Virus record (IMG/VR): IMGVR_UViG_3300035661_000001
Coordinates: 372,001 to 436,000 of that record
Reading direction: 5' to 3' (one strand)
Length of the DNA stretch: 64,000 nt
Position numbers and translations under genes: made by a program. A model generated the notes under the pieces. It made no database searches. It was not told where the DNA came from and was given only the letters and a program-made list of their open reading frames with translations. Positions 42,312 through 60,769 of this stretch are shown here, in pieces (positions within the stretch are counted from its first letter, which is position 1; every line of letters begins with the position of its first letter).

Positions 42312-42359
42312 GGGGAGGGAGAGGATCGCCTCTCCCCTTCTCTTTTGCCGTTCTGTCAT

Positions 42360-44081: not shown

Positions 44082-44691
44082 TCCCGCCGGGGAGGGTTCG
44101 CCCTCCCCATTCTCACCCGGACGGATAGGCGAGCGCCTATCCGTCCCCTCCCTGGGATCGATCCCATCGGAGAGGAGAGAGGCGGCTCACAAGCGCTGGC
44201 GGGCGGGCGTGAGTATCTTAACGCGCACGTCTCTCTTCTCTCCGCTGCGACCCATCCTTGGAGCACAGCACCGGCTAACCCATCCTCATTCACACGTGGA
44301 GAAGGTCATGCAACATCTCATCATCGGGTTTCTCATGGGCGGCGCCATCCTGGCGATCGAGCAGGCGGACCGGCAGATCGTCCCGATTCTCACCGGCGTC
44401 CCCATCACTTCCGAGACGCGCTGGATCAGCGCGGACGCCTACAACCGGGCGGGCGAGTTCCTCTCCGAGTGCGAAAGCCGCACCGGCTGCTTCACCTCCT
44501 GATCCCATCCCCAGCTACGTCGAGGTTCCTCATGAATGATCGAATGGGTACGTACGTCACCACGGTCGTGGGCGGACGCCTGTGCATCAACGACGGGGTC
44601 GGCTGGCATCCCATCAGCGCCGCCTGGCTCGCCCAGCACGGCTGCTTGTTCCGCAAGCGGTAACCAATCCCATCCTCTGAGGAGACTCCAC

Positions 44692-45009
44692 ATGTGGAGA
44701 GACGATGAGATCAACAGGCTGGATCATCCAGCCCCCGACGGATATGTCCGCGTGGCTGCGGAAGATCCTCCCATCGACAAGGATGACGACTACGCTCTCA
44801 TCATCTGCCACGTCGTTTCCTGGCTCGGGAAAGGTTTCATGCCGGCGGTTCGATACTTCGATCGCTCCGGCACCTTTCGTCCCTGCCACAACGGCGACGC
44901 CCATCGCGGAGAGGATCGAGCTGCCTATGACTCCGCTGTCACGGAAGGGCGCAAGATCCTCGCCGACATGCAAGCGCTCACGAAGTCCCACACGTCTCCC
45001 ATCTCCTGA
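44692..45009 (+). CDS. Hypothetical protein
   Basis: GAGGAG RBS, MWRDDEIN... Confidence 0.6.
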   Translation: MWRDDEINRLDHPAPDGYVRVAAEDPPIDKDDDYALIICHVVSWLGKGFMPAVRYFDRSGTFRPCHNGDAHRGEDRAAYDSAVTEGRKILADMQALTKSHTSPIS

Positions 45010-45016
45010 GGACGCC

Positions 45017-45250
45017 ATGAACCAGAACAGCAAGACCGCGCCCGTTCGCAACGCCACCCACGACGAGGCTCTTCTCGCCGACGAGGCGAAGTATGCCCCC
45101 GGCGGACGTGTCCCCGCCCATCTCCAGGTCGACGACTACGAACCCGCGGGCTTCACTCGCATCACTCGTGCTCGCCCGAGCAAGCGCGCCCAGAGCGCGG
45201 AGCGCGAGCGGTTCGACACGCGCCGGCAGCCGCGCGAAGGCAAGTACTGA
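45017..45250 (+). CDS. Hypothetical protein
   Basis: GAGG RBS, MNQNSK...; stop followed by TCCCATC. Confidence 0.6.
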   Translation: MNQNSKTAPVRNATHDEALLADEAKYAPGGRVPAHLQVDDYEPAGFTRITRARPSKRAQSAERERFDTRRQPREGKY

Positions 45251-45403
45251 TCCCATCGGGGATGTAGGTCTCGGGTTGGTAAGGCTGGATCATAGGCACT
45301 TCGGTGCCCCCGCACCAATCTTTGCTCTCTCTATAGGAGAGGGGTAAGAAAGGTTTTGAACGGCGGTTGAGTCCAGCGCTCGAAACTGAACGCATGTTTC
45401 TGC

Positions 45404-45481
45404 GGGGTCTTCCCATCGATGGTTAGAGTCCTGCCGTCAAACGTAGGATGGTGCGGGTTCGACTCCCGCAAGACTCCACCA
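45404..45481 (+). tRNA. Atypical/degenerate tRNA-like element (8-bp acceptor stem, G3:U70, encoded CCA)
   Basis: GGGGTCTT/AAGACTCC-A-CCA; T-arm GCGGG-TTCGACT-CCCGC; anticodon arm TCCTGC-CGTCAAAC-GTAGGA; 5' side of the D-stem is CCCATC. Confidence 0.6.
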
Positions 45482-45621
45482 AGAAGATCACGTGAAGTAT
45501 CTTCGTACATCCCATCAACGACGACGCGACCGCGGAGTCAAGGCTCGACACCGCGAACCGGGGATGCGTTGGAACCGTCGCAAGGACAATCCTTCACCAA
45601 AGCCCGCCACGGCTACGCCTG

Positions 45622-46068
45622 ATGTTCAGGAACACACCTAAATCCCATCTCACCAACCTTCGGCACGAGGTCATGATGAATCAGATCAGCGAAAAGGCGA
45701 AAGCGTTCAAGGCGGCAATGGTGGCGAAGCGAGCCAAGGAGAAGCTCCAGACCGCCCATCGAGATGAGCAGCACGCCAAGCGTACCGAGGCGGGTTACGT
45801 CGACACCGCGCAGAGCGAGCGCGCCGACGACTTCGACTGCGCCCGAGCCTGGGACGCCATGGAGGCGTCCGCGGAGAAGACCTCCCATCGACACTCCGCG
45901 AAGCACGAGGCGCAGGTCGCCCGTCTCGCCGCCGCGCAGCAGGCACGGGTCGCCCGCGGGGAAGCGGACCCCGAGCCCATCCCGGTCAACGACCGCAGCC
46001 ACAACGAGCCCTTCCCGGTCGTGGAGTACAGCCCGGTCCGCGTCGCGCCGGATTTCGACGAAGAGTGA
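45622..46068 (+). CDS. Hypothetical helical protein
   Basis: High GC3; start may be 45673 (GAGG RBS). Confidence 0.65.
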   Translation: MFRNTPKSHLTNLRHEVMMNQISEKAKAFKAAMVAKRAKEKLQTAHRDEQHAKRTEAGYVDTAQSERADDFDCARAWDAMEASAEKTSHRHSAKHEAQVARLAAAQQARVARGEADPEPIPVNDRSHNEPFPVVEYSPVRVAPDFDEE

Positions 46069-46123
46069 TCACCTGCCCCGGCGCCGAAAGGTTCCGGGGC
46101 TTCGCTCTTTTCTTTTCTGTCTT

Positions 46124-46197
46124 GGCACGGGCTTTGCAATATACACTTCTCATGCCAACCCAATGGCACATCTTTTGCAATCTGCAATGTCCGGTCC
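46124..46197. promoter_or_regulatory. Two head-to-head sigma54 pairs after a terminator (46075-46120)
   Basis: GGCACGGGCTTTGC-AATAT-ACACTTCTCATGCC (46124-46156); GGCACATCTTTTGC-AATCT-GCAATGTCCGGTCC (46165-46197). Confidence 0.8.
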
Positions 46198-46239
46198 AAA
46201 CCCCGGAGCACCCATCCTCTAGAAGCCCCCGGCTAACCC

Positions 46240-46701
46240 ATGCACTACGCAATCGAGATCGTCGGTTCTTTCCTGGGTGTTGCCATTCCCGCGTGGTTGC
46301 GCGTGTTCGACTGCCGCAAGCCCATCGGGGAGGAGTTCTCCGCCAAGGCACCCTGGACGTATACCTACGAAGGCAAAACGTTCAGCCCGGCTTTGCTCGG
46401 CTCCGAAACCGCCGCGGTGGATCTCGGATTGCGAACCGAGAAGGAGAACAACGCAAGCTGCCCATCCTCCGGCTCGGGTTACGGCGACACTCGGACCAAT
46501 GAGTCGGAAGCCCATCTGGCAGTGACTCGCATGATCGAGAGCGCCATCCAGCATCACGAGAAGTGGCTCTGGGCAAACGCTCAACCCAAGTCGACCGATG
46601 GCGGCGGGTGCTACTACCAGCCCATCGCGGTCGCCCTCTGCAACTTCGGCTGGTCGGTCATCGCTGACGGTCGGCACTACGTCGTCCCCCAGTACGTCTA
46701 A
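46240..46701 (+). CDS. Hypothetical protein
   Basis: 153 aa, high GC3, TAA-CCCATC end. Confidence 0.6.
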   Translation: MHYAIEIVGSFLGVAIPAWLRVFDCRKPIGEEFSAKAPWTYTYEGKTFSPALLGSETAAVDLGLRTEKENNASCPSSGSGYGDTRTNESEAHLAVTRMIESAIQHHEKWLWANAQPKSTDGGGCYYQPIAVALCNFGWSVIADGRHYVVPQYV

Positions 46702-46730
46702 CCCATCTCAATCTTCAGAAGAGGTACGTC

Positions 46731-47174
46731 ATGCAAGTCATTCTGATGAGTGGTATCCCGGGAAGCGGTAAAGCGACCCTCGCCAAGGAATTGGGTGGTC
46801 CCCTGACCGTTGTCTGTTCTGCCGACGATTACTTCGTCGATCCCATCGAGGGCGCGTACAACTTCGATCCATCCAAGTTGTCGGAAGCGCACGGCGACTG
46901 CATGCGCAAGTTCGTTTCCCATCTGCTCCTCGACGAGGCGGATACCATCATCGTCGACAACACCAATCTGACGGCACTGGAGCTTGCTCCGTACGTCGCC
47001 GTGGCGGCAGCCCATCATGCCAGCGTGGAGATCGTTACCGTTAACTGCAACGTGGATGTTGCGGTGGAACGGAACACCCACAATGTTCCCATCGGTTCCA
47101 TCCGTCGGATGGCAAGGACGCTCCTCGACCGGGCGCTCCCGCCTTACTGGAACGTCATTCAGACGGTGCGCTGA
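46731..47174 (+). CDS. AAA_33 / polynucleotide-kinase-like P-loop protein
   Basis: GIPGSGKAT, SADDYF, IIVDNTN, RNTHNVP. Confidence 0.85.
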   Translation: MQVILMSGIPGSGKATLAKELGGPLTVVCSADDYFVDPIEGAYNFDPSKLSEAHGDCMRKFVSHLLLDEADTIIVDNTNLTALELAPYVAVAAAHHASVEIVTVNCNVDVAVERNTHNVPIGSIRRMARTLLDRALPPYWNVIQTVR

Positions 47175-47191
47175 CCCATCCGAGAGGTGTC

Positions 47192-47401
47192 ATGAAGTTC
47201 ATCGACTGCAATAGTCCGGGCTGCATCTTCGTCGGAGAACAGGTTCACTGTGACGGTCTCTCCTACCTGGGAGGTCATCCCTGTCCCATCTCCGACGAGC
47301 TGGCAACCAAGCTGATGACGGACCCGGGCGACGAGGAAGGTCCCTGGACTCTCCAGCCGGCGCCGGCGTTCTGGGCTGACAACAACGGCAAGCCTGACTG
47401 A
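47192..47401 (+). CDS. Small Cys-rich hypothetical protein
   Basis: GAGG RBS; TGA-CCCATC end. Confidence 0.55.
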   Translation: MKFIDCNSPGCIFVGEQVHCDGLSYLGGHPCPISDELATKLMTDPGDEEGPWTLQPAPAFWADNNGKPD

Positions 47402-47419
47402 CCCATCTGAGGAGCACAC

Positions 47420-47614
47420 ATGATCGTTAAGGTAACGTTCAGCATTTCCGGGAACGGTCAAAACGGAATGGGATGTGTTCCCGAGCCTGGGAAGTTCGAC
47501 ACCGATCCCATCACCTGGGCGATCGGTTTGGAATACTTCTCCGCTTCCGAAGCGCTCGTGTGCTGGGATCCGTTCCAGGACGGTTCCCTCTACTGGAAGC
47601 CCAAGGGCGACTGA
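47420..47614 (+). CDS. Small hypothetical protein
   Basis: GAGGAG RBS; TGA-CCCATC end. Confidence 0.55.
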   Translation: MIVKVTFSISGNGQNGMGCVPEPGKFDTDPITWAIGLEYFSASEALVCWDPFQDGSLYWKPKGD

Positions 47615-47643
47615 CCCATCTTCTACCTTCCACGGTGATCGTC

Positions 47644-47913
47644 ATGAATCGTAAACCTAGGACGAACGGACCGAACCTGCACATGTGCAATCCTTTGGCG
47701 GTGCCTACCCCATCGAAAAGTTACATGTTCGGCGTGGAGATCACCGATCAGAACCAAGCCGAGCTGTACGATGCCTATCGGTCGGGACAGTCTATCGGGG
47801 ATGCGTTCTGGTTCGCCGAATGCATGTACGATAAAAAAGAGCGTCTTGCTCTGATCGACCGTCGCGTCGCCGGGGGCATGTCGTTCCACCCATCCTCTCA
47901 CTCACTACGGTGA
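47644..47913 (+). CDS. Hypothetical protein
   Basis: MNRKPRT... high GC3. Confidence 0.5.
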   Translation: MNRKPRTNGPNLHMCNPLAVPTPSKSYMFGVEITDQNQAELYDAYRSGQSIGDAFWFAECMYDKKERLALIDRRVAGGMSFHPSSHSLR

Positions 47914-48443
47914 TGATCATGATGATCGACTGCAAGTGTTCGGGCAACGTGGCGTGTTCCGGTTGCAAAGCGGCGGCAGCGCAGGAGCCCCGAGCGGAAC
48001 GCCAGGCGCCTCCCGCTCCCGAGACCCATCGTCCCTGCACTCGCTGCAAAGGCGAGGGAACGATTCCCGATATCTTGAACAAGTCCAAGATGCGCGACTG
48101 CCTCTCGTGCGGCGGGACCGGCGAGTTCGCACCCATCAACCTGGATGATCTCCTGAATCGCATCCGGGCGAGCCAGGGCAAGAACAAGGGTCGGCTCCGC
48201 GCCAGCATGACGTCTCCCATCCGCAAGGACGGGATGAATGCGGCGCGAGCCTACTACGTCTGGCGCATGGCGCGCTTCCACGGCGGGCAGGATACCACCA
48301 TGCCCATCACGGCTTCGTACTGCGTCCACGGTGATCCCTTCACCGACAAGCTCGACGCCATCGCGGATCACATCGCCAAGCAAGCCTTCGGCACGGATCT
48401 TGCCGGGGTCGCTCGCTGGGCTCGTGCCTTCGGGATGGTGTGA
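47910..48443 (+). CDS. Protein with DnaJ-type CxxCxGxG zinc finger
   Basis: CTRCKGEG and CLSCGGTG; TGA-CCCATC end. Confidence 0.65.
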   Translation: MMIMMIDCKCSGNVACSGCKAAAAQEPRAERQAPPAPETHRPCTRCKGEGTIPDILNKSKMRDCLSCGGTGEFAPINLDDLLNRIRASQGKNKGRLRASMTSPIRKDGMNAARAYYVWRMARFHGGQDTTMPITASYCVHGDPFTDKLDAIADHIAKQAFGTDLAGVARWARAFGMV

Positions 48444-48472
48444 CCCATCCGTTAACCGAAGTCGAGGTTGCT

Positions 48473-48721
48473 ATGACGGATACACAACGGGCTCTTCGTG
48501 AGGCATTCTTCAAGCAGGAGGAGCGGCTCGCCCATCTGGTGGATGACAAGCCGGAGAACCCTTCCAATCTGGAGAAGGCAGCTTTCTGTGAAGCCATGTT
48601 CGATTTCCGTGCGGCGTGGTTGCATGCCGTCGGCTTCCGGGACGGTCTGCAAAAGGCGTGCCAGCTTGCGGGGATCCAGGGTTTCGAGGAAGCGGTCCCA
48701 TCCACTACTCCGGCGGGGTGA
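48473..48721 (+). CDS. Hypothetical protein
   Basis: GAGG RBS, MTDTQRALRE... Confidence 0.55.
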   Translation: MTDTQRALREAFFKQEERLAHLVDDKPENPSNLEKAAFCEAMFDFRAAWLHAVGFRDGLQKACQLAGIQGFEEAVPSTTPAG

Positions 48722-48725
48722 GGAT

Positions 48726-49016
48726 ATGAATCTACCCCGCGGCTACGAAGTCGGTGTCGTTCGTGTCTCGCGTTGCGATGAAGCGCAGGAGCATGCCAGG
48801 CTCACCTCGACCCATCGTCAGGGTGACTGCTGTGTCATTCAAGATGCGCTGTTCGAGGATGGTGTGGAGGTCGAGGGCGCAGCCACGGTCTCCCGCTGGA
48901 ACAGCGGCAAGCAAGTCTTCCCCGAACCCATCAGTTCTCCGAACTGTCTGTGGGACGAGGAGCTCGAAGCGGATTACCTGACCGAACTCTATCGGCAGGA
49001 TCAGGACAGGGAGTAA
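48726..49016 (+). CDS. Hypothetical protein
   Basis: GAGG RBS, MNLPRGYEVG...; TAA-TCCCATC end. Confidence 0.55.
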   Translation: MNLPRGYEVGVVRVSRCDEAQEHARLTSTHRQGDCCVIQDALFEDGVEVEGAATVSRWNSGKQVFPEPISSPNCLWDEELEADYLTELYRQDQDRE

Positions 49017-49276
49017 TCCCATCTACAGGAGTTCGACATGTGCATCAAGCTCGGTTCTTGCAAAGGCGAATGTCCTGGGTGCAACACGCGTCGAGCCCGG
49101 CTCGACGCGGACCGAACCGCCAAGCCGTTGAGCCGGATCGTTTCCCATCCTCCGCGAGCTTGGTGCTCTGGTCCGGGAACCATTCTGGTGGACCCGGAAT
49201 ACGAGCTGCCCGACGGGGTGCGACTGGCGCTGACCTGAGAGCTGGTTCCCATCCAGCAATGTAAGGAGAGGTAATC

Positions 49277-49570
49277 ATGAATCACGATGCCCATTTCGAC
49301 CGCATTGCTCGCGAGATTCGTGAAGATGATCTCGAAACCTTCACCTTCGCCGAAGCCCAGGGATGGGCAAAGGAGCTGGGCTTCTCCGTCGAGCGCCCAT
49401 CCTCCGTCATCCAAGCTCTCGAAGCGCGGGGATTGAAGAAGGTCGAGAGGCAACCGCCTCGCAAGTTCCGCACGTTGGGGAGCAATCCTCACGATCGCTG
49501 GCAAGCCTGCCCGTCCCATGGCGGCGGCGCGGGCGACAGCATGATCGGGATGGCGGGACGAGCTGGATGA
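49277..49570 (+). CDS. Hypothetical protein
   Basis: AGGAGAGG RBS; followed by a terminator hairpin (49582-49629). Confidence 0.65.
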   Translation: MNHDAHFDRIAREIREDDLETFTFAEAQGWAKELGFSVERPSSVIQALEARGLKKVERQPPRKFRTLGSNPHDRWQACPSHGGGAGDSMIGMAGRAG

Positions 49571-49632
49571 TGGGCATCATTGGGCGCTGCCTCGGAAGGG
49601 GTCGCGCCCTTTTGCCGTTTCGTTTTTTGGTT

Positions 49633-49665
49633 GGCATACTGTTTGCACTCTGCACGATAGGTGCC
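49633..49665. promoter_or_regulatory. Head-to-head sigma54 pair
   Basis: GGCATACTGTTTGC-ACTCT-GCACGATAGGTGCC. Confidence 0.8.
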
Positions 49666-49706
49666 ATCTCGATTCCCATCCTCTAATTAGCTGTCCGGTG
49701 ATTACC

Positions 49707-49856
49707 ATGTCAAGCAAGGCGTCGAAGAATGCTGAGGGGATGACGTTCGCGGAATGGTTGGCTGCCGCCCATCTGCCGGAAGTAGATCCCCCGATCGACG
49801 CAGCGATTGCCTGGGCGCGGTGTGAAGATCCCGCCGACTGGCTCACGGGAACCTGA
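49707..49856 (+). CDS. Microprotein (49 aa), paralog of 52402
   Basis: NAEGMTFAEWLAAA...AWARCEDPADW. Confidence 0.6.
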   Translation: MSSKASKNAEGMTFAEWLAAAHLPEVDPPIDAAIAWARCEDPADWLTGT

Positions 49857-49879
49857 CCCATCTTCCAACGACAGAGAGA

Positions 49880-50275
49880 ATGAACATGAAGCAAGTTCTT
49901 CGTATCATCGGTGGTCTTTCGATGCTCGTGACTCTCTGTCCGCCGCGTGCGGCGCAAGGGGCTTTCGATTCCCGGCTCGAATCCTACGAGGATCGCAATC
50001 CCATCCTCGGCGGCAAGTCGACGGAGGAGTTCCTGGCTCTCCAGGAACGGCAGGGTCCGAGCGAGGACGACTGCGAGGTCACCGTCGCCAACATCCTCGA
50101 TCCCATCGAGTCGGAGGGAGAGGACGAGAACGGCGGCGAGATCATGGGATTCGCCACGCAGCCCCGGAGGACCCGTTCCCATCGGAGCTACGACAACGCT
50201 GTCAGCAACGCCGGGTTCGAGGAGAGCGTGCTCTCTTCGCTGGTCGACGCTTGGATGAATCGCGGGAGGACCTGA
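49880..50275 (+). CDS. Acidic hypothetical protein
   Basis: 131 aa, hydrophobic N-terminus. Confidence 0.55.
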   Translation: MNMKQVLRIIGGLSMLVTLCPPRAAQGAFDSRLESYEDRNPILGGKSTEEFLALQERQGPSEDDCEVTVANILDPIESEGEDENGGEIMGFATQPRRTRSHRSYDNAVSNAGFEESVLSSLVDAWMNRGRT

Positions 50276-50426
50276 AGTCCAACCCATCGACCTGATTCTT
50301 TCAGGTCGGAGACCAGGATAGAGGCGACGCAGAAGCGACCCTTGGCAAACCGCCAGCAGCCGCCTCCCGACTTCTCTATCCTGATCTCCGGTCCGAACCC
50401 ATCAAGCAAGATATCGAGGCAAGGTC

Positions 50427-50711
50427 ATGTATAAGAACACCAAGCACGGCGTCGCGGCATTCCACCAGAACATCGCGTTCACGGGACCGAGCTCCCGCGT
50501 GCTCGTCGGTGAGCAGGATGGTGATCCCATCATCACGATCTTCTCCTACGATCTCAAGGTCGGGGAGAAGCGGGGCGGACCGTTCGGGAAGATTCATCTT
50601 CTTCCCATGCCCATCAAGGGTACGCCGATCGAGCAGGGCGGGAGCAAAACGAGCCGCTCCTTGATCCGGGCGCTGTGGGCGCAGTATCCCACTGCTCAGA
50701 AGCTCGTCTGA
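50427..50711 (+). CDS. Hypothetical protein
   Basis: 94 aa, high GC3. Confidence 0.6.
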   Translation: MYKNTKHGVAAFHQNIAFTGPSSRVLVGEQDGDPIITIFSYDLKVGEKRGGPFGKIHLLPMPIKGTPIEQGGSKTSRSLIRALWAQYPTAQKLV

Positions 50712-51115
50712 TCTTTCCCATCAACAAGATCGTCAGAGGTGATCATGTTCTCATCTTTCAAGCCGAACGACATGCTGTGGGTCGAAGGTGTCAAGCTGGA
50801 GTCCCGCCGCTACTTCTTCGCGCTCGGCGCCATGAGCGCCGCGCTGGTCATCTACGGCGGGTTCCTCTTCGCCACCGGGTCCTGACCCATCCTGGAGATG
50901 TCATGGAAAAGAAAACCTACGTCGTCAGGATCTCCGTCAACCCGGCGACGGGAAAAGAGATCATGATCAACAACGACACCAACGAACCCATCACGGGCAG
51001 GATCACCCTGGCTGGTATGGTCCTCGTCGGAACTCGCCTTAGCGGGTTCAGTAAGCTGCTCCTGGTTTTCGAGGAGCGGTAGAGTCCCATCGTTCACAAC
51101 GAGAGGCACAAGTTC

Positions 51116-51358
51116 ATGAGAGAAGTTCGTTTGATTGGTGGCGTTCCGTTCAACGTCATGGTCTGCCCGCCGCAGCCTACCCCGGATCCCATCCGGGAAG
51201 TGGAGATGTCGGTCGACATCGAGGCGGGCATGGCGAACCAGCTCGACGGCGTGTTCTTCCCGTTCACGGGTGAGCCCATCGTCGGCAACGCCACGGACAT
51301 CAACGCGCATGTCGATGCGCGAGCCGGTGATGCCCGTCTGTTCGAGTCGCTCGGCTGA
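51116..51358 (+). CDS. Hypothetical protein
   Basis: 80 aa, GAGG RBS. Confidence 0.55.
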   Translation: MREVRLIGGVPFNVMVCPPQPTPDPIREVEMSVDIEAGMANQLDGVFFPFTGEPIVGNATDINAHVDARAGDARLFESLG

Positions 51359-51417
51359 TACGTTCAAGTCCCATCCAAGTCCATTCCGCCAACCGTTCAG
51401 ACAAGGAGAGATACGAT

Positions 51418-52533: not shown

Positions 52534-52888
52534 CCCATCGGACGAGGACCACTGATCATGGATATGAAAACGATTCGTTTCCTCGACGAGCTGATCGCTA
52601 CTCCGGAGGGTCAAGCGCTCATCCGGTCGCGGTGGCTTCATGCTCAAGAATCTTCCAAAGCCAAGGCGGCGGCGGAATGCAAAGCTGCCGAAGAAGCACG
52701 CAAGGCGGGTCCTGGTCCCTTGACGGGATGGGATTGCTGGGCGTGTGGATGAGCGTGCGGAGCGGATCTCGCGGGAAGCGCTACGTTGCCCATCGTGCCA
52801 CTGTCTGCACGGTCTTCGAGCGGCGCCGGGGGCGCCTGATACCGAGAGACGCTACTAGCCCATCCTCGATTGGGGATCAGGTGATGCC

Positions 52889-53221
52889 ATGTCGAACCTC
52901 AGAGCCTTCCAAAAAGAGTACGCGAAGATCCGAGGTCGCTCGCATTGCGAGAACCGAAAAGAATTCAACCGGCTAGCTCTTGCGTGGCTGGAAAAGCGGG
53001 GCTTGGAAAAAACCCCGGCGAACTGGATTCGAGCAGCGAACGAGGTTCCCATCCCCTGTCGCCGATGTGCTCAGACCGGGCGATTCATAACGGGGACGAT
53101 GAACGGTCAACCGACCGGACCTGGCGGTGATTGTTACCGCTGCTCTGGTAAGGGCTGGCAAAACGATGATGATGCTCGGCGCAACTACGGCGCGGACATT
53201 CATCAGATAGTCCGCCTCTAA
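52889..53221 (+). CDS. Zinc-finger hypothetical protein
   Basis: CRRCAQTG and CYRCSGKG; TAA-CCCATC end. Confidence 0.6.
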   Translation: MSNLRAFQKEYAKIRGRSHCENRKEFNRLALAWLEKRGLEKTPANWIRAANEVPIPCRRCAQTGRFITGTMNGQPTGPGGDCYRCSGKGWQNDDDARRNYGADIHQIVRL

Positions 53222-53238
53222 CCCATCGAGGAAGAACC

Positions 53239-53508
53239 ATGGACGTCGATACGATTCTTCAAATCTGCTGTGGTACGGGAACCGGACCCTCCAAGCCCAT
53301 CGTGGCGGAGGAAGGGAAACCCAAACCGCGGTCGCTGAAGTTCACCATGATGTATAATGCCCGATACACGGGTTATTACTACGTCAGCCCCGACAGCCCC
53401 AATCCCCATCAGGCTGCGCTCGATCACTGTCGTCACACCTCCAATGAGGCGTGGCACGGAACGCCTTCCGACAAGGCTCCTGGCACCTGGGAAAATTACC
53501 GGGGCTAA
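53239..53508 (+). CDS. Hypothetical protein
   Basis: GAGG RBS; TAA-CCCATC end. Confidence 0.55.
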   Translation: MDVDTILQICCGTGTGPSKPIVAEEGKPKPRSLKFTMMYNARYTGYYYVSPDSPNPHQAALDHCRHTSNEAWHGTPSDKAPGTWENYRG

Positions 53509-54322
53509 CCCATCGTCTCGACCATCGGAGAATGTTTATCATGTGTGACAAGATCGGTTGCCCTGGTCCTGCATCATGCCCCTCCGTTGAAGACGAGAAG
53601 TTGGTTGCGATGACCGACCCATCGGCATTCCTTCTGCGTGAGGTTCAGCGGTTCGAGGGCATCACGATTCTGATTGGGGATTGCCGCGATGGCGATGCCT
53701 ACTTCGCCCTGCCGCGGGTTCTCACATTCGAGGACAAGACCTTCGCTCTGACCGGCTGGAACAGCGATGCCCATCAAGCCTATTGGAAGGTCGGTGGTCT
53801 GATCGCCAAGCGCGGGGCGCGGATCGATCGCCCGATTGAAGGGTCAGAGCTAGGCTTCCCATCCGGGTCACCGGCGCGGGAGTATGCGCAACCCTGCGCG
53901 GAGGTAATCATGAAGTGGACGTGCTTCGGAGTTTGGAAAAACCGTTTCGTATTCCGAACGGACGACCCATCTGGATCGTGGGTATCGATGGTGTGGCACT
54001 GGCGCGTACGGGTGCGTCCGTGAAGCCGCAATTGAGAGCGGTGCTCAGCTACAACCAGCTACTACCCATCCTCAGCGATTATGAGCTGAAGATGGTCATC
54101 GCTCGGTTGAACACCGACTACTTCGCCGAGGCATACCATCGACGGGTGTACCTCGGGATCCTCGCCCAGAACGGCTGGACCGATGAAGGGTTCGATCAAG
54201 AGACGCTTCGTCGTATCGATGCTGGATGGGATATCAAGACGCCGCCGCCGCGGGGTGATCATCCGATGGCGAAGCCCGAGACTCGAAAGAGTTCCGGGCT
54301 TTTGCCCGTTCTGTTTTTTGGT

Positions 54323-54355
54323 GGCACGAGCCTTGCATATAGCACTTTACGTGCC
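54323..54355. promoter_or_regulatory. Head-to-head sigma54 pair after a terminator (54271-54320)
   Basis: GGCACGAGCCTTGC-ATATA-GCACTTTACGTGCC. Confidence 0.8.
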
Positions 54356-54912
54356 CAGCAAGTGCGTTCCTAGTAAATTCCGGGCACCCATCCTCTAGCA
54401 GTCTGGTCGGTAAGAGCAAGTCGTTGCCTACCGATAACAAGGTGGGCGGCGCATTGGGAAGCAACGAATCCCATCTAAATTGTTAGGGTTGACTGTTCAG
54501 GGTCATACTGTTTAAGGTCTGGAATATCTGAGTCCCGGCACCCTTCGATCGATGTAGTTGCAGTCCCATCCGTTTGGTGGTATCGCATAAACCAGCCAGT
54601 ACGTTTGTCGGTAGTCGAATAAACCGTCATCACGCGCCAATTGAGTTTCGGGGAAGCCGATCCGAATGTAGGTCCCGAGTAAAGGAACACAGCCCATCTA
54701 CGGAAAATTTGGGCTAGCAATCTCAAGCAGCGCGACGCAGCAGAAGGGCGCCGTTTCGTTTTGGTCGGGAGTCTAAGATTGTCCCATCAGAAACGTGGCG
54801 GAACTGGAACTGGCACTCAACGAATGAAAGGTAGGTTCGGCTTATGCCACGAGACTCGCCGTGATAGTCGTTGGTTCGGGGGATACAGGGTGGAGCCCAT
54901 CCCCAATTTGTG

Positions 54913-54993
54913 GGCAGTGTTTCCGGTTGTTGGTATCCGGTGAGGGGTTTGAACCGCCCTTCATAGTGGGTTCGATTCCCATCATTGCCTCCG
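54913..54993 (+). tRNA. Degenerate tRNA-like element
   Basis: Acceptor GGCAGTG/CATTGCC-T-CCG; D-stem CCGG/CCGG; T-arm GTGGG-TTCGATT-CCCAT; irregular anticodon loop TTTGAACCG. Confidence 0.55.
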
Positions 54994-55012
54994 CTAGTGA
55001 TCCCGGTTAGGG

Positions 55013-55399
55013 GTGGATGAAAAGACACGGGTCTCTCATATATTAAAGACCACCGTCGTGATCACTGGCAACAACTTCTATCGACTCATCTTTTCATCGA
55101 AGGTGTCTATGGCAACGGAAACATTCGGTCGTTCGCCGTACTACGGCTGGGAGATTCTTTCCATCGACGAGGCACTTGCCAAGATTGGGATCGAATCCCA
55201 TCTCGTCAATGGTTTGTCTGATCTCACCAGACAGCACAATCGTCTGTACTACAAGGAGGGCGAGCGGATCCACAAGCCCACGGAGTCGCAGCTCCGTCGG
55301 CGCTGGGCTTTTCCCATCCGAGGCAGCGAGTTCAAGTTCGTCGTCGTCCAGCGCAAGGAAGAGGGCGCCAGCGGTTACGAGTTCTGTATCGGGACCTGA
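55013..55399 (+). CDS. Hypothetical protein
   Basis: ORF ending TGA-TCCCATC; start uncertain. Confidence 0.5.
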   Translation: MDEKTRVSHILKTTVVITGNNFYRLIFSSKVSMATETFGRSPYYGWEILSIDEALAKIGIESHLVNGLSDLTRQHNRLYYKEGERIHKPTESQLRRRWAFPIRGSEFKFVVVQRKEEGASGYEFCIGT

Positions 55400-55704
55400 T
55401 CCCATCGGCGGAGGAACCATATTCTATCTCGAAGGTTTCTTGTTCTGCGAAGGGCTTACCGCCGCGGACCATGGCAATGCCATGATGGAGGCGGGGAAAG
55501 TAGCAGACGTCGCGACCCATCGGACTGTCATCCTGGTCTATCGTACCGTGGGGGACACCGAGATGATCTGCACCAAGATTCAATCTTTCGAGGATTGCCG
55601 GAGGGCTTGTCCCATCGATAAAAAAGATGCGGACGATCTGCTTCGCGATTACATGAAGTCGGCGTTCACGATGCTCTCTGACTTGCGAGGGTAGGAGACC
55701 CATC

Positions 55705-55926
55705 ATGGAAATCGACAAGCTGGTCAAGGACCTGACGGAAAACGCCGGGCTCTATCCCGGATCACGGGTGGTTATTGGAACATCCTCTCAGGTTCTCAAC
55801 AGGGAGATCCGGGGGATGGTCGCGGCGAAACGACTTCCCATCGCCGAAGGTTCCACGCTGGGCGACGAGGATGGCGAATGCAGCAGCCTATTCCTCGTGA
55901 CGACGATACCTGTTTCGGCAGAGTAA
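55705..55926 (+). CDS. Hypothetical protein
   Basis: AGGAG RBS with CCCATC between RBS and ATG; TAA-CCCATC end. Confidence 0.6.
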   Translation: MEIDKLVKDLTENAGLYPGSRVVIGTSSQVLNREIRGMVAAKRLPIAEGSTLGDEDGECSSLFLVTTIPVSAE

Positions 55927-56029
55927 CCCATCAACGGAGATCGATCATGACCATTGCAAGTGCCGTTCTAGCTCAAGGTTCGTTAAAGAGCAGGCGCACC
56001 ACCAAAATCTGATCCCATCGGAGATTGAC

Positions 56030-56266
56030 ATGTATAGTGTTCACCTCTTCTTCCTGATCGATCGTGACACTCTCAAGGTCGACCGCGCTGCGATCTGGAG
56101 CGATGGTACTCCGTGCATCGATCAGTCTCGATACATCCCGGTCAAGTGGACCTCATGGGATGGCAAGACCCATCAAGAAGCGCACGATCGAGCCACGAAC
56201 TATCTCCGAACTCATGGCAACAGCGCCATCGGTGAAGCGCTCACGAAGATGGTACTCGGGGGATAA
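56030..56266 (+). CDS. Hypothetical protein
   Basis: GGAG RBS; TAA-CCCATC end. Confidence 0.6.
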   Translation: MYSVHLFFLIDRDTLKVDRAAIWSDGTPCIDQSRYIPVKWTSWDGKTHQEAHDRATNYLRTHGNSAIGEALTKMVLGG

Positions 56267-56450
56267 CCCATCAGAATGGAGCGATCTTCATGGAAGAGCT
56301 GAGCCTCAAAGGTATTTCTCTGAAGGGAAGGAATCGTATCCGGGGGAAGGAATCGTATCCGGGAATTGGGATCCATCTGGATGGTTCTCCTTTACCGAAA
56401 CACGGTTCGCTTCAGCCCCATCCGCCTCCCCGGCGGAGGATGGTTATGGT

Positions 56451-56810
56451 ATGAAACACGATCATTTACGTGTCATCCTTCTCGCCGAATTCATGAGCGA
56501 TGATACCGCTCTAGAAGATGCCGTGCTCGCAATCTATCGGAAGCAAACCGAAGATGAGAAACGGCAGGGAGCGACAACCCATCACAACAAGGTTGGCTTC
56601 AGCGGGTGTGATGCTCGTCAAGCCACCTACTGTGCCAAGTGGTTGCTCGACACGAACGGGAAACGGAATCCCCATCGACATCTGTCTGGCAGATTCTTGG
56701 ATTGGGCACGACGGGCGATGCCGAAGTACGCCGGACAACTGGCGACGATCGTGGCAGCGAAGGAAGAATCTTATCTCGTCGGCGAGAGGATTGCGATTCA
56801 GCAGTTTTAA
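56451..56810 (+). CDS. Phage hypothetical protein
   Basis: AVLAIY.KQT.DEK....T.HHNKVGFS..DA...KYAGQL; GGAGGA RBS. Confidence 0.65.
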   Translation: MKHDHLRVILLAEFMSDDTALEDAVLAIYRKQTEDEKRQGATTHHNKVGFSGCDARQATYCAKWLLDTNGKRNPHRHLSGRFLDWARRAMPKYAGQLATIVAAKEESYLVGERIAIQQF

Positions 56811-57212
56811 TCCCATCTTTCGAGGACATCATTCCATGACTACCGACGAAGCAATCGAGGACATCTGGCGGCGGGTCGCGACCTCTGTTCGGGAGGACGT
56901 CGACCCATCGGTTCTCCAGTGGGTGTCTGACAGACTGTGCCGCGCTGATTGGTGGTACGGTGATGGCAAAACGACCGACAACAAGACTGTCGGTTGGGGA
57001 AACAAGCACCCATCTACAAAGGATTTTCCAGAACGATCATGATCGGTAACAAGGTGACGCCGGCGAAGCGATACTTTGTTGGTCATCTTCAGATACGGGC
57101 AGCCGATGCCAAGGTCTCCCTCCGGGAGATGCTCGGTACGAACACGTTCCCATCGTTACCGCTCGACGCCGAAGGCAATCGACTCTACCTCTAAACCATC
57201 TACGGAGGCTAC

Positions 57213-57434
57213 ATGAAACAAGCATACGACGTGGGCGACAACGTGGATGGTACGGTCACCAAGGTGGGCAGGACCCATCTGACCCTTACCATCGGAGATA
57301 CCACGGGACGACTGCCGCTCTCGGATGTGCGTGCGGTTGCTCGACGTGCGATCCCCATCGTCGGAGCCGACATGAACGTGACGGTCGCAGGGACGAAACG
57401 CGGTAAGCTGGTTCTGAGTTTCAGCCCGGGCTGA
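57213..57434 (+). CDS. Single S1 RNA-binding domain protein
   Basis: YDVGDNVDGTVTKV...GRLPLSDV...VGADMNVTV......KLVLS; GGAGG RBS. Confidence 0.7.
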   Translation: MKQAYDVGDNVDGTVTKVGRTHLTLTIGDTTGRLPLSDVRAVARRAIPIVGADMNVTVAGTKRGKLVLSFSPG

Positions 57435-57629
57435 TCTCAATCGTTGCGCAGTCGAAAGATGAGAGATCATGCACAACGGATCAGGCGTGAGGATCAAAAA
57501 ACCTACACCGAAGACCGCCCATCCGTTGGAGACTTCGCGCAACAACATCTGTAAGAGATAAGGAGAAAGGATGCGAATCCGAGATGGTCCGCTCTGAATG
57601 ATGTTGACGGGTCGCGAGCTTGACATTCC

Positions 57630-58004
57630 ATGAGGATCAAGCTCGCGACTTCCTTGTTCCCATCGGAGGATAAGATGTTCGGTACTCAAGAGACAACGCA
57701 AAAGTTTCAGAAGCTCGGCTTCTCTCTTCCCAAGCGGAGAGGCGGTGGTAACCCAGACTTCGGACCCATCCTGGCGTTCATCGAGCGTAGGATTGCCGGG
57801 GTGATGGAGTTCTATACCAACTGCCGTTCCGAGGCGGTGTTCTCTCGTGAGCTTCGGGAAACGATCAACCGAGAACTTGCACCCATCATCCCCGACACCG
57901 AGAAGACATTCAACCTGGAGCCGATGAACTTGGTTCTCATGGTTCGGACTACCAAGGACCCTGGTGTTCTTTTGGTCCGCGCGGAAAACCCCAATCTTTG
58001 CTGA
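57630..58004 (+). CDS. Hypothetical protein
   Basis: 124 aa; start may be 57675 (GGAGGA RBS). Confidence 0.55.
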   Translation: MRIKLATSLFPSEDKMFGTQETTQKFQKLGFSLPKRRGGGNPDFGPILAFIERRIAGVMEFYTNCRSEAVFSRELRETINRELAPIIPDTEKTFNLEPMNLVLMVRTTKDPGVLLVRAENPNLC

Positions 58005-58444
58005 TAGCATCGAGGTGCCACGTGGGCATTCCCATCTTCATCGGATTCTCTGAAGCGAACGTCGCTTTCTTTAACCTTCATTCCAAAAAGGTTGGCGACG
58101 ACTTCTCGGTCGATGCAAACTTCTGCGGCGATCCTTCTGATCCCATCAACAAGAAAAGGTGTTTCAGTGGCGAAGAAGACGACGAACGGAATCATCAGTG
58201 CCGCAACCGCGACGTGCGCCGCTCGCCGCGCGCTTGTCGGCGTTGCTCACCAAGCTGAACGTCCAGATCAGGGACGGAAGCCGGTCTTTCTACGCGGGAG
58301 TCCGGGAGAAGGATATTCCCGACGGGATGTTCCCCTTCGGCGCGCGCGCGTTCCAGAAGAAAGATCTGGGCTGGAAAGTGAAAGTCGGCGAGCGCGATGG
58401 TTCGATCAAGGTCCGTCTCCCTGGCGAGCCGGGAGACCCATCTG

Positions 58445-58648
58445 ATGGAAAAGCAAGTCAATGCCGGGGGAGAGCAGCTCTTCGCTCTCGCCCTGAAGAT
58501 CCCATCGGGACTCTCCGAAGCGGAAGTCACGAGGCGAGTTCATTCGATGCTGTTCGGTCTCAGCGCGGCGGCGAAGACCGCCGGAGTCGAGGTCGTCAAG
58601 GGTCCGGTTCTGGAGCGGTTCATTTCTGCTCATCTGACCGGCAAGTGA
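58445..58648 (+). CDS. Hypothetical protein
   Basis: GGAG RBS, MEKQVNAGG... Confidence 0.5.
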   Translation: MEKQVNAGGEQLFALALKIPSGLSEAEVTRRVHSMLFGLSAAAKTAGVEVVKGPVLERFISAHLTGK

Positions 58649-59245
58649 AACAAGAAAGTCGAGGAGGTCCCATCGTGCAGAAAAGTTCTTCGTGGTTCAT
58701 GGTTGCCGCGGTTCTCGCGGCGGTGTCTTCGCTGGGCTGCGCCGATCGTGGCAAGCCTCCCGAGGTTCCCAAGACGTTGACCAGCACCATCCCATCCGTG
58801 ACGCCGGCGGACCCGAACGTGTCGCGCTGGTGTTTCTCCACCGCCGAGACCATGACGTGCGTGCAGCGCACCACGCTCCCGAGCGGCGTCAAGAAGGTGG
58901 AGATGATCTACATTCCCATCCTTCCTTCGGCGCGGTAAATCTATGTCGAAGACCACTATCAAGACCAGCGAGCTTCAAGGGGCGTTCGATCGATACCGCC
59001 GGCTCCCCCTTGCTGGTGATCTGGAGCCAAACCTGGACTTTCAGTGGTGGCAAGAGGGAGTCGCCAATCTCGCCGAGGTGACTCCCATCATCGCCAAGCA
59101 GTACCGAGAGGACCGGACTGCTTGCATCATGCACGGTCCGTGCTCAATTCCCGGGCGGTGATCTCGACGCGATCCGCCGCTTCTGTGAATGGTGTCTTTT
59201 TGGTGGTGTGGGCAACATGGTTCTCGCAACGCATCAGGATGCGCC

Positions 59246-59515
59246 ATGACCCATCCCGTGACCGGGCTTGACCTTCACGAAGGGGACGCCGAGACTGACC
59301 TCGCCGCGTGGATCAAGTATGATCATCGACGTGGCGAATATGAGGGGGACAAGTACCGTTATGATTCTTGCCGGACAACGGCGGGAGCGGATCATCATCG
59401 CCCTCTCGTGCTCAAAACACGCAAAGCATACGCGGCTGCCCATCAGGCTTTAACCACGTTAGGTTATGAGCCTTCCGGTTACGAACCGGAACCTGAGACC
59501 TACTTCAACAAGTGA
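59246..59515 (+). CDS. Hypothetical protein
   Basis: MTHPVTGLDLHEG... Confidence 0.5.
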   Translation: MTHPVTGLDLHEGDAETDLAAWIKYDHRRGEYEGDKYRYDSCRTTAGADHHRPLVLKTRKAYAAAHQALTTLGYEPSGYEPEPETYFNK

Positions 59516-60460
59516 GCCAATCATGATGAACTTCTGCAAAGGTCTAGTCGAGTGGATCAAGGACGATCCTCCCCGCTCGCTTGCCTTGATCGGCGTGGGA
59601 GCAATGGTCACCTTGATCGTTCTCTGGATGATTAGGTGAATCGTGAAGCTCAAAGAGCTGCGAATTTTTCTCGACACCCATCTTGCCGATGGTACGCTCA
59701 CTGACGAGATGGAAATCAAAAGCCGTACCGGCGGATATGAGGCGCAGCATCTTGCACACGTTTCAATCGAGCGCGATCATAACGGGATCGAATACCTCGA
59801 AAAAGAGGTCCTGAACTTCAGTGCCGATCCGTGAGACTCATTCAGGAGAATCGATCATGAGCTACGACACAATCATCCTTCTTTTCATCGTGTTCTTTGC
59901 TGGGATCGGATTCCTGATTGCCCATCTTACCGGCATGATGATCGGTGGCTTGATTGCCTTCTTGATCATTCAGTTTCTGAGGTATCTCGCTCTTTCGTTC
60001 TGAGGACGATTGTACAGCGACGTACAACATCCAACCCATCGGATCTCCATGATGATGAGTCTCATGTTACAAAACGAAGATATGAAATACTCGCTTCCGA
60101 CCCGCTGGGAGATGTACGGCATCTTTCGTGGTAAGAGCGAGTATGGTCGTCGTTCCAGGTATCAGGCTCGCATGAATCGGAACGATGCTTATCTTGCCGC
60201 CAAGGGCAAGAGCAAACCCATCAAACATGGGGAACGATCGTGAGAGAGACTGACGACGAATGGTATACGCGGATACGAACCACCCCGGTCGAATCGTATT
60301 ACGAAGTCAATCCGTTGGTGAGTGATCTCGCGGAGATCGCCCGCCGCTGTGCGACCGACCCATCGCTGCGCGCTATCAAGGATCAAGATGCAACGATGGT
60401 GCCTTGTACCTGCGATGAGTGCGAAGGCACCAGTTTCGTCTGACCCATCCAAGGAGAAGT

Positions 60461-60700: not shown

Positions 60701-60769
60701 ACAAAAACTAGACGGGAGCGAGGGGCGCCGGCATGCCCCTCGCTCCCTTTTTCTTTTCTTATTTTGAGT

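Follow-up and report, generated by a model that had tools for sequence, protein, structure and literature searches.

In the early-gene region of a 452-kb phage (IMG/VR record IMGVR_UViG_3300035661_000001), many small genes end exactly where the hexamer CCCATC begins, and the hexamer sits a fixed 29 bases (less often 23 or 17) before the start codon of the next gene. The sequence analysed is a window of 64,000 nt (positions 372,001 to 436,000 of the record), and all coordinates below refer to it. The original prediction listed 18 sites at which a stop codon is followed directly, or after a single T, by CCCATC, and the observation is confirmed at every one of them. Thirteen have the stop immediately before the hexamer, five have an intervening T, and each of the stops closes an open frame of 49–250 codons. 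The accompanying statement that a ribosome binding site usually follows is also correct. Four to six additional sites had been missed, four of them clear and two weaker (stops at 52856 and 44276), while the chance expectation is about 1. The individual junctions and the other features discussed are given in Table 1.

Table 1. Coordinates of CCCATC junctions and associated features (window positions).
Position	Strand	Feature	Detail
39340..39613	.	AT-rich non-coding boundary	GC jumps from about 32% to about 60%; motif zone begins here, with three copies within 55 nt at 39614-39668
39614..64000	+	Dense CCCATC zone	176 forward copies, 5 reverse; early-gene region of small + strand ORFs, GC 54-63%
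44500..44534	+	TGA, T, CCCATC (44504)	ATG 44532; motif to ATG = 28
45248..45257	+	TGA, T, CCCATC (45252)	Followed by a 425-nt stretch without a called gene, holding a tRNA-like element
45412..45417	+	CCCATC copy, left breakpoint of a 3732-nt deletion in a related strain	Right breakpoint is the copy at 49144-49149; one copy retained; joint 45412->49145, 5 shared letters
46123..46179	+	Two sigma-54-type promoter matches (TGGCAC-N5-TTGCA)	After a terminator-like hairpin at 46096-46108; further exact matches at 40720, 40777, 42359, 49632, 54322 and 60769
46211..46242	+	CCCATC-N23-ATG with no upstream gene	First gene after a sigma-54-like promoter; same design at 41741, 44279, 50398, 42106 and 49248
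46699..46733	+	TAA, CCCATC (46702)	N23, ATG 46731 (AAA_33 kinase gene); TAA-CCCATC conserved in the G001 ortholog, synteny ends just after it
47172..47194	+	TGA, CCCATC (47175)	SD, ATG 47192; gap 17; tightest junction
47399..47422	+	TGA, CCCATC (47402)	SD, ATG 47420; gap 18
47612..47646	+	TGA, CCCATC (47615)	N23, ATG 47644
47889..47894	+	CCCATC copy, left breakpoint of a 1378-nt replacement in runs X6 and X7 (one sample)	Homology resumes at the copy at 49248-49253 and its leader; joint 47889->49268 and the 40 letters between
48441..48475	+	TGA, CCCATC (48444)	N23, ATG 48473
49014..49040	+	TAA, T, CCCATC (49018)	ATG 49038
49854..49888	+	TGA, CCCATC (49857)	ATG 49880 (distance 23) and 49886 (distance 29)
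50883..50905	+	TGA, CCCATC (50886)	SD, ATG 50903; gap 17
52381..52404	+	TGA, CCCATC (52384); not originally listed	ATG 52402; others of this kind at stops 56010, 59247 and 63106
52531..52560	+	TAG, CCCATC (52534)	ATG 52558; gap 24
53219..53241	+	TAA, CCCATC (53222)	SD, ATG 53239; gap 17
53506..53543	+	TAA, CCCATC (53509)	ATG at distance 23 or 32
54354..55000	+	Stretch with no coding signal, downstream of a sigma-54-like promoter	Keeps the lattice (copies at 54387, 54470, 54565, 54693, 54783, 54896, 54978); ends in a tRNA-like element
55397..55406	+	TGA, T, CCCATC (55401)	Next start uncertain
55924..55932	+	TAA, CCCATC (55927)	
56264..56292	+	TAA, CCCATC (56267)	ATG 56290 (distance 23)
56808..56838	+	TAA, T, CCCATC (56812)	ATG 56836 (distance 24)
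60441..60463	+	TGA, CCCATC (60444)	SD, ATG 60461; gap 17

Of about 61 plus-strand gene ends between 39.6 and 64 kb, 18 are followed by the motif at offset 0 or 1, whereas random positions gave a mean of 0.75 and a maximum of 5 in 2000 trials, and stop trinucleotides that are not gene ends are followed by it in 2.4% of cases. The gene calls were made in the current study and cover only 72% of the zone. A count that needs no gene model was also performed, using frames open for at least 60 codons, and was extended to two related phages of ~440 kb (G001 and G002) whose early regions are barely alignable. Offsets 0/1 gave counts of 12/7 in the present phage, 13/6 in G001 and 10/0 in G002. Pooled over the three genomes, offset 0 holds 35 ORF ends and offset 1 holds 13, against about 2–3 (about 2.7 per neighbouring offset) at other offsets from -45 to +45. 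Orthologs either keep TAA-CCCATC or gain TGA/TAG-CCCATC independently.

One of the three readings originally offered was that intergenic gaps are simply the cheapest place to keep a lattice of the motif. This is true in part, since 75 of 101 junction gaps of at least 17 nt hold a copy, and intragenic copies favour the cheapest frame (CCC-ATC), although all three reading frames are used. It cannot explain the sharp peaks at offset 0 after the stop and at exactly 29 nt before the ATG. Within gaps that have room for other positions, 22 of 67 motifs sit at offset 0 or 1, against 7.6 expected under uniform placement, and no case in 100,000 simulations reached 22. The outcome named beforehand as counting against a special role, i.e. 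uniform position within gaps and no coincidence with breakpoints, is not what was found.

The stop is not the primary partner of the hexamer, which is phased instead to the next start codon. The arrangement CCCATC-N23-ATG occurs 19, 19 and 11 times in the three genomes, against 2.7, 2.3 and 3.4 expected. The ATGs open ORFs that are mostly at least 50 codons long, and 11 of the 19 in the present phage have no abutting stop. G002 shows a weaker peak at -29, and none when starts were called by their SD. Of 61 called genes, 44 have a copy within 45 nt upstream, and the tightest gaps (17–18 nt) contain nothing but the motif, the SD and the spacer. Start-linked copies in the other genomes keep a weak YAA at +9..+11 and a G-poor stretch. 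A fourth relative, G003, carries a composite element of 15 bp, CCCATC-N3-TAACGG (76 of 90 TAACGG copies), 30 nt before about half of its small genes; CCCATC-N24/25-ATG holds in 44 of the 76 copies, roughly one per small gene, and stops lie 0–2 nt before the element in 8 of 12 detectable cases.

The phasing to starts bears on a second original reading, that the motif punctuates genes as an mRNA-processing or translation-coupling signal. This is supported in the sense that a subclass of copies is strictly phased to gene starts inside polycistronic units, but the phasing holds equally strongly for first genes after promoters, where nothing terminates upstream, so that termination-reinitiation coupling is not required. 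In such a scheme a ribosome stopping at UGA/UAA with CCCAUC in its entry channel would be retained and restart at the next ATG, making contact with the stop itself the function. The very sharp offset-0 peak is in keeping with this, as are the gap lengths of 17, 23 and 29, which share one frame relation, and the investment of the phage in translation (41 tRNAs, an S21 homolog and an RF-1-domain protein). However, offset-0 copies also occur before stretches with no downstream gene (45252, 55401, 63109), and in G003 the stop is usually 1–2 nt away. Reinitiation is considered the least likely of the alternatives.

CCCATC is not a sigma-70 promoter or a terminator. Sigma-70-type sites between 44 and 64 kb are at chance level (6 found, 5.7 expected) and none is tied to the motif. 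There is no conserved flank beyond the absence of C at -1, and terminator-like hairpins occur at only 4 places, upstream of promoters and not at the motif. Separate sigma-54-like promoters with preceding terminators define units of several kb, and in most cases a copy of the hexamer follows 27–49 nt after the last base of the promoter. The motif could still be the core of a promoter for an unidentified phage RNA polymerase, one in front of each early gene, with the fixed distance to the ATG reflecting a minimal leader. The G003 composite would fit, as would the purging pattern described below, because reverse copies would fire antisense transcription and forward copies in the late zone would fire late genes early. 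This appears improbable, as about 95 copies are intragenic, copies sit only about 18–40 nt downstream of the predicted start of the sigma-54-like promoters, and the 17-nt class leaves no room for a transcribed SD, yet an SD follows the motif directly. Searches with PF00562 and PF00940 gave no match, and no RNAP beta-like or T7-like polymerase was detected, but this is weak evidence because the PF00940 control was silent and divergent phage polymerases escape Pfam.

The third original reading, micro-homology for the shuffling of gene cassettes, is supported by two structural variants in related strains. One is a clean deletion that joins two CCCATC copies exactly, while the other is a replacement, shared by two runs of one sample, whose left end is the first base of a third copy and whose right-hand homology resumes at another. 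Gene order is also shuffled between relatives, with cassettes bounded by the motif. The closest known parallel is the PeSL (promoter-early plus stem-loop) cassette of T4-type phages (Arbiol et al. 2010, PMC2839356; Comeau et al. 2014, PMC4122927), also a short conserved element between small, mostly ORFan early genes in hyperplastic regions, where recombination between copies produces the insertions, deletions and replacements that distinguish related phages. A PeSL, however, is a sigma-70-like promoter plus a terminator hairpin and is tens of bases long, whereas CCCATC is 6 nt, is neither promoter nor hairpin, is phased to the start codon, is abundant inside genes and belongs to a genome-wide one-strand gradient. 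In the present phage the terminator/promoter pairs are separate elements.

This gradient runs over 60% of the genome, with 360 forward and 7 reverse copies. It begins sharply at about 39.6 kb of the window, where copies are regularly spaced at about 100 nt, and decays over about 270 kb through a middle zone of about 1 copy per kb to zero in the late structural zone; the same architecture is found in G001, G002 and G003. The forward word is 5–15 times above Markov expectation across the bearing zones, and an estimated 26 times or so above base-composition expectation in the densest 10 kb. The reverse complement is purged genome-wide and both orientations are purged from the late region, while one-mismatch neighbours are not. 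In the low-density zone only 4 of 129 copies abut stops and there is no N23-ATG peak. Confirmed minus-strand genes carry the motif on the plus strand of the genome (6 forward, 0 reverse; 7.3 expected from local density, 2.5 by chance), so that polarity follows the genome axis rather than the sense of each gene.

These features speak for a polar DNA signal read by a tracking machine from the first-injected or origin end (a Chi-like nuclease attenuator, KOPS-like translocase guide or primase site), for which spacers would be cost-free places with no role in gene expression; purging of the reverse complement genome-wide, and of both orientations from the late region, is more natural for a signal read on double-stranded DNA. 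Chi (RecBCD/AddAB) and KOPS/SRS (FtsK/SpoIIIE) are likewise short G-rich words (here GATGGG on the minus strand), over-represented and with extreme orientation bias along a replicon axis, but they occur once per several kb rather than once per 100 bp, and are not known to be phased to start or stop codons, regularly spaced or purged from part of a replicon. Such a signal alone cannot account for the 29-nt distance to starts where no upstream ORF constrains the gap, the one-per-gene composite of G003 or the recurrent position after sigma-54-like promoters, and Chi or KOPS models do not predict that forward copies are purged from the last 140–170 kb. We consider it unlikely, although it is the strongest of the alternatives. 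The EcoP15I sites of T7, which all lie in one orientation (Type III restriction needs head-to-head sites), share the selection against the reverse orientation of an asymmetric 6-mer, but T7 shows bias without enrichment, while here the forward word is enriched, graded, regularly spaced, gene-phased and purged from the late zone.

Almost as likely, but still doubtful, is a target for a phage endoribonuclease that times the decay of early messages, as RegB does with GGAG in T4 early leaders (see also the review of T4 prereplicative transcription, PMC2988021). Dense sites would mean the earliest shut-off, and cutting between stop and leader would separate cistrons. Density follows the presumed temporal order, from dense small early ORFans to no sites in late genes; copies lie in early leaders, giving a temporal class a common handle; regular spacing would yield fragments of about 100 nt; and the lattice persists in a presumably transcribed non-coding stretch. 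Against this, GGAG is the SD itself while CCCATC lies 29 nt upstream of the ATG and separate from the SD, a cut 23–29 nt before the ATG leaves the ribosome site intact, purging of GATGGG from sense strands is not predicted, and the predicted accessibility of the motif is only slightly above that of its flanks (0.45 against 0.375). Strand-symmetric purging and an intragenic lattice have not been described for RegB sites. A search with the RegB profile PF10715 gave no match, but the profile also matched in no control genome. Translational enhancers such as the epsilon element of the T7 gene 10 leader are also short leader elements upstream of the SD at a set distance from the start; they act by rRNA complementarity, and are not known to be repeated inside coding sequence or purged on the opposite strand.

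The original interpretation is thus partly supported, and the explanation favoured here, with moderate confidence, is that the contacts mark a compact intercistronic module consisting of the stop of one gene, CCCATC, a leader of fixed length containing the SD, and the ATG of the next gene. The hexamer would be the 5' edge of that leader, canonically 29–30 nt before the start codon, with shorter versions at 23–24 and 17–18 nt, and in this tightly packed region the upstream ORF would have been trimmed, or extended, right up to that edge. The comparative data establish that the phasing exists and, for two variants, that the copies, which flank most cassettes, serve as micro-homology where genes are deleted and swapped, whereas compaction as the cause of the abutment is an inference. 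Since the hexamer lies inside transcription units, downstream of separate sigma-54-like promoters, it is most likely a sense-strand signal of the early programme read on the transcript or on the non-template strand, although this is inferred from sequence alone. Control of translation start, or of 5'-end formation or decay of early messages, is no more than a preferred guess. The module is only one use of the motif and cannot be its whole function, as most copies belong to the intragenic lattice or the low-density zone; of the 176 copies in the dense zone, about 95 lie inside genes at regular spacing of about 100 nt.

A more speculative possibility, considered unlikely but not excluded, is that CCCATC is the word of a so far undescribed polar 'early-programme code' in a clade of ~450-kb phages. 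Its sharp boundary would probably be the first DNA to enter the cell, and a single tracking machine would read the word to set when and how strongly each part of a huge genome is expressed or processed. The stop/-29 module would then be where gene architecture has locked onto the code, and the same word would also drive cassette exchange in the early region.

The junctions show how extremely compact phage gene boundaries are built: stop, a 6-nt signal, a fixed leader, then the start. They provide a concrete sequence handle on the early programme of uncultured ~450-kb phages, which could be used to annotate early genes, predict start codons and find cassette boundaries. As the word also marks where genes are lost and swapped, it extends the PeSL concept of regulatory elements as recombination joints to a much shorter element. 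The surrounding features, which are directly testable (the one-strand graded lattice, the purging of both orientations from the late region, the 60-to-30% GC gradient and the sigma-54-type early promoters), suggest an unknown way of organising the expression or handling of a very large phage genome.

The phage record examined here is 451,956 bp in length, has a terminal overlap and is rated 100% complete in IMG/VR. Up to about 39.5 kb of the window the DNA is about 32% G+C and carries ordinary phage genes, including a DnaB-type helicase, ribonucleotide reductase, PhoH and an RF-1-domain protein. After an AT-rich non-coding stretch the composition jumps to 54–63% G+C, and from there on the genes are small + strand ORFs with GGAG-type ribosome sites, almost all of which lack family matches (one is an AAA_33 kinase). 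Across the whole genome the G+C content runs as a gradient, from about 60% at this boundary to 47% at the ends of the record, 44% at 0–70 kb and 30% by 200 kb, before jumping back sharply at 411.6 kb. The features discussed below are collected in the following table.

Coordinates of features in the window (w) and in the genome record (g)
Feature	Coordinates	Strand	Remarks
Compositional boundary	w ~39,570 (g 411.6 kb)		G+C jump
CxxC ORF run	w 36800–38600	+	small paralogous ORFs, just before the boundary
Stops abutting CCCATC, beyond the 18 predicted	w 52381, 56010, 59247, 63106		
First gene after a promoter	w 46211 (motif) to 46240 (ATG)		CCCATC-N23-ATG, no stop nearby
Sigma-54-type promoter matches	w 40720–60784; g 412.7–445.4 kb		exact hits at w 40720, 40777, 42359, 46123, 46164, 49632, 54322, 60769
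Deletion in a related strain	w 45,413–49,144 skipped		between the CCCATC copies at 45412 and 49144
Replacement in a related strain	w 47,889–49,267 replaced		left end at the copy at 47889, resumes with the copy at 49248
tRNA-like element 1	w 45404–45477	+	contains a CCCATC copy and the deletion breakpoint at 45412
tRNA-like element 2	w 54912–54990	+	contains a CCCATC copy
Stretch without coding signal	w 54354–55000	+	about 650 nt, downstream of a sigma-54-like promoter
tRNA with anticodon CTA	g 80119–80195		would read TAG
RF-1-domain protein	w 35194–36282		
Ribosomal protein S21 homologue	g 227514–227672		
Minus-strand genes of the motif-bearing zone	g 7.5–214 kb; e.g. 65104–65619, 69129–69851, 103940–104860, 142544–143485, 184376–185056	-	mostly HNH, GIY-YIG or LAGLIDADG homing endonucleases
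Duplicated tRNA-Arg(TCT) pairs	g 42–243 and 451744–451945		terminal overlap of the record

The original prediction had described 18 places in this region at which a stop codon is followed directly by (T)CCCATC, and the observation held at every one of them. Thirteen have the stop directly before CCCATC, five have the stop, then T, then CCCATC, and each stop closes a long open frame. At least four further sites of the kind exist. Against about 61 gene ends, the 18 contacts compare with 0.75 expected for random positions. The gene calls are our own, from a codon-usage and SD heuristic that covers 72% of the zone, but the result does not depend on them, as counting every stop that closes a frame of at least 60 codons gave 12 and 7 cases at offsets 0 and 1. 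The interpretation offered with the prediction (a cheap place for the motif, punctuation of genes, or micro-homology for cassette shuffling) is only partly supported, as described below.

The helicase led to three related records of 433–448 kb, with 71–83% helicase identity, here called G001, G002 and G003 (IMGVR_UViG_3300009545_000018). All carry the same word with the same polarity, with 360 forward and 7 reverse copies in this phage, 352 and 4 in G001 (counted after turning this record, which lies in the opposite orientation, to match), 246 and 4 in G002, and 111 and 25 in G003. All four also share an architecture consisting of a sharp onset, a dense zone of 25–40 kb, decay over about 270 kb, and then 140–170 kb without the word. 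The early zones are almost unalignable between genomes and the shared genes are in shuffled order, so that they serve as nearly independent replicates. The stop contact recurs, with 13 and 6 cases at offsets 0 and 1 in G001, and 10 and 0 in G002. Pooled over this phage, G001 and G002, offset 0 holds 35 cases and offset 1 holds 13, against 2–3 at any other offset from -45 to +45. Uniform placement within the intergenic gaps had been named beforehand as an outcome that would count against the prediction, but within gaps that have spare room 22 of 67 copies sit at offset 0–1, against 7.6 expected under uniform placement, so that 'anywhere in the gap' is not enough.

A megablast search against GenBank phages gave no match, and no tRNA or Rfam family reached gathering level over the window. 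A metagenome scan with the AAA_33 kinase returned only distant, unrelated contigs with no lattice, and a 349-kb IMG/VR contig proved to be 99.96–100% identical, and so of no use for studying variation. Literature searches for the hexamer, or for a regularly spaced one-strand phage motif, found nothing relevant.

The primary partner of the motif is the start codon. The distance from the motif to the next start has a sharp mode at 29 nt, and a count of CCCATC-N23-ATG that requires no gene model gave 19 in this phage (2.7 expected), 19 in G001 (2.3 expected) and 11 in G002 (3.4 expected). Neighbouring spacings are at background, except for minor modes at 23–24 and 17–18 nt in this phage. In its dense zone the motif-to-ATG distances cluster at 17/18, 23/24 and 29/30, that is in 6-nt steps, and stop-to-start gaps of 17, 23 and 29 share one frame relation. 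Nearly all of the ATGs in CCCATC-N23-ATG open ORFs of at least 50 codons, and 11 of the 19 in this phage have no stop nearby, including first genes after promoters. The position of the SD inside the 23 nt varies, so the fixed quantity is motif-to-ATG. Of the 61 genes called in the dense zone, 44 have a copy within 45 nt upstream, 17 of them at 28–30 nt, seven at 22–24 and eight at 16–18. The 18 predicted sites are a subset of these start-linked copies, with motif-to-start distances of 17–18 (six sites), 20–24 (six), 28–29 (four) and unclear (two).

In G003 the element is longer, CCCATC-N3-TAACGG (76 of 90 TAACGG copies), and lies 30–31 nt before an ATG in 44 of 76 copies, about one per small gene. 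The leaders of these small genes end in TAAT-ATG and lack a clear GGAG. Upstream stops lie 0–2 nt before the element in 8 of 12 detectable cases. A partial scan of IMG/VR for this composite found multiple copies only in G003 itself. Start-linked copies in the other genomes retain a weak YAA at +9..+11.

Several alternative identities of the motif could be excluded. It is not a peptide motif, as intragenic copies use all three frames (0/1/2) in 58/33/12 cases, frame 0 (CCC-ATC, both C-ending codons) being the cheapest in GC3-rich genes. An extended motif that includes part of the stop codon was also rejected, as intragenic copies show only 'no C at -1' and no context resembling a stop. Nor is it a general gene-end mark, because in the low-density zone (0–232 kb) only 4 of 129 copies follow a stop, and there is no start phasing. 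Minus-strand genes do not explain the 5 reverse copies, since tblastn against the relatives shows that the + frames are the real ones. The predicted RNA accessibility of the motif is only slightly above that of its flanks, which is not informative. Recoding of stop codons was also considered. Of 41 tRNA genes, one has the anticodon CTA, and an RF-1-domain protein and an S21 homologue are also present. TAG is a rare stop outside the early zone (2–6 per zone against 9 in the early zone). However, ORF coverage did not rise with TAG read as sense, and the gains with TGA or TAA were not clearly zone-specific, so the standard code was kept.

The motif is not a sigma-70 promoter or a terminator, and separate elements appear to do those jobs. 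Four terminator-like hairpins are each followed by a match to a sigma-54-type promoter consensus (TGGCAY-N5-TTGCW), of which there are 27 hits with at most one mismatch in the window against 4 expected. All nine exact forward hits in the whole genome lie in the early zone, and the relatives show the same. Several have a second, convergent copy 19 nt downstream on the other strand. A CCCATC copy follows 27–49 nt after the last base of the promoter in most cases, and the motif therefore lies inside the (predicted) transcription units, in 5' leaders and between cistrons. Pfam searches of the genome for Sigma54_activat, RegB and RNAP families were negative or uninformative, and no sigma-54 activator domain was found in the phage. 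Early transcription by host sigma-54 polymerase would be unusual for a phage.

Why the stop should touch the motif can be considered from the junctions themselves. The shortest (17–18 nt) contain only the hexamer, the SD and the spacer, while other junctions in the zone are 4–12 nt or overlap. In this view the genome is a compacted one from which non-functional spacer is removed, and if the functional unit of the downstream gene begins at the first C of CCCATC, the upstream ORF could end anywhere before it, and deletion bias would drive its stop to the edge, yielding an offset-0 spike with a short tail (offsets 1–9). Orthologues would show the process, as TAA-CCCATC is conserved between this phage and G001 for the gene starting at 46240, while the G001 orthologues of the 57213 and 57675 genes have TAG- or TGA-CCCATC where this phage has not. 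Compaction against a start-linked leader element is considered the best explanation, and somewhat more likely than not. A role of the stop itself, through termination coupling, is less likely, because the -29 rule holds without an upstream gene and some offset-0 copies precede no gene. The stop contacts, the phasing to the start codon and the positions of the breakpoints described next are directly seen in the sequences, while compaction as their cause, the promoter assignments, and any function of the hexamer on RNA or DNA are inferred from sequence alone.

Contigs of related strains (about 90–97% identical) aligned to nt 44,500–50,499 showed two structural variants, although the analysis rests on a few short contigs. 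One is a clean deletion between two CCCATC copies, with 5 shared letters at the joint and one copy left. The other, seen in two runs (X6 and X7) of one sample, is a replacement whose left end is the first base of a copy. After 20 novel letters the sequence resumes with a further copy and its leader, whose length of 29 is preserved. Three of the four ends coincide with a copy, where about 7% is expected per end, and assembly with 31-mers cannot create joins at a 6-mer. The deletion breakpoint at 45412 lies in one of two tRNA-like elements (acceptor stem plus T arm) found in non-coding stretches of the early zone, which are sub-threshold tRNA-Sec hits (E about 0.001) and were not called by ARAGORN. 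Between genomes, conserved genes travel as units of CCCATC, leader, ORF and stop, and similarity ends at the next copy. This parallels PeSL-mediated shuffling in T4-type phages (PMC2839356, PMC4122927), although here the shared sequence is only 6 nt and is not a promoter/terminator pair.

The stop and start contacts are part of a wider lattice. In its densest part (44–58 kb) spacing is regular, with a mean of 119.5 nt, a CV of 0.39, and 3% of gaps under 60 nt against 39% for a random process, while in the sparse zones it is Poisson-like. About 95 of 176 copies are intragenic, and the lattice continues through a stretch without coding signal in any frame, possibly a non-coding RNA ending in the second tRNA-like element. 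Just before the boundary, a run of small paralogous ORFs with CxxC pairs lies in extremely G-poor DNA (GC skew -0.4 to -0.5), and the few CCCATC copies there may be due to composition alone. G+C content and motif density are separable. G001 shows the same G+C gradient as this phage, whereas G002 and G003 have a weaker G+C elevation, their dense zones being only 45–52% and 37–42% G+C, yet keep the motif gradient. The duplicated tRNA-Arg(TCT) pairs at both ends of the record are the terminal overlap that leads IMG/VR to class it as having direct terminal repeats, and say nothing about the physical genome ends.

The reverse complement is purged, with 6, 3 and 3 copies in the bearing zones against about 70, 80 and 55 expected. 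In the late zones GATGGG is seen 1, 1 and 1 times against about 31, 32 and 21 expected, and CCCATC 0, 1 and 0 times against about 9, 10 and 5, while one-mismatch neighbours are not avoided. Confirmed minus-strand genes, which are rare in the motif-bearing zone, carry 6 forward and 0 reverse copies, against 7.3 expected from local density and 2.5 by chance, and polarity therefore follows the genome axis, or the dominant + strand transcription, and not the sense of each gene. These features favour a signal that matters on DNA, or on any transcript of either strand, and keep DNA-level explanations alive, but they do not change the reading of the stop contacts.
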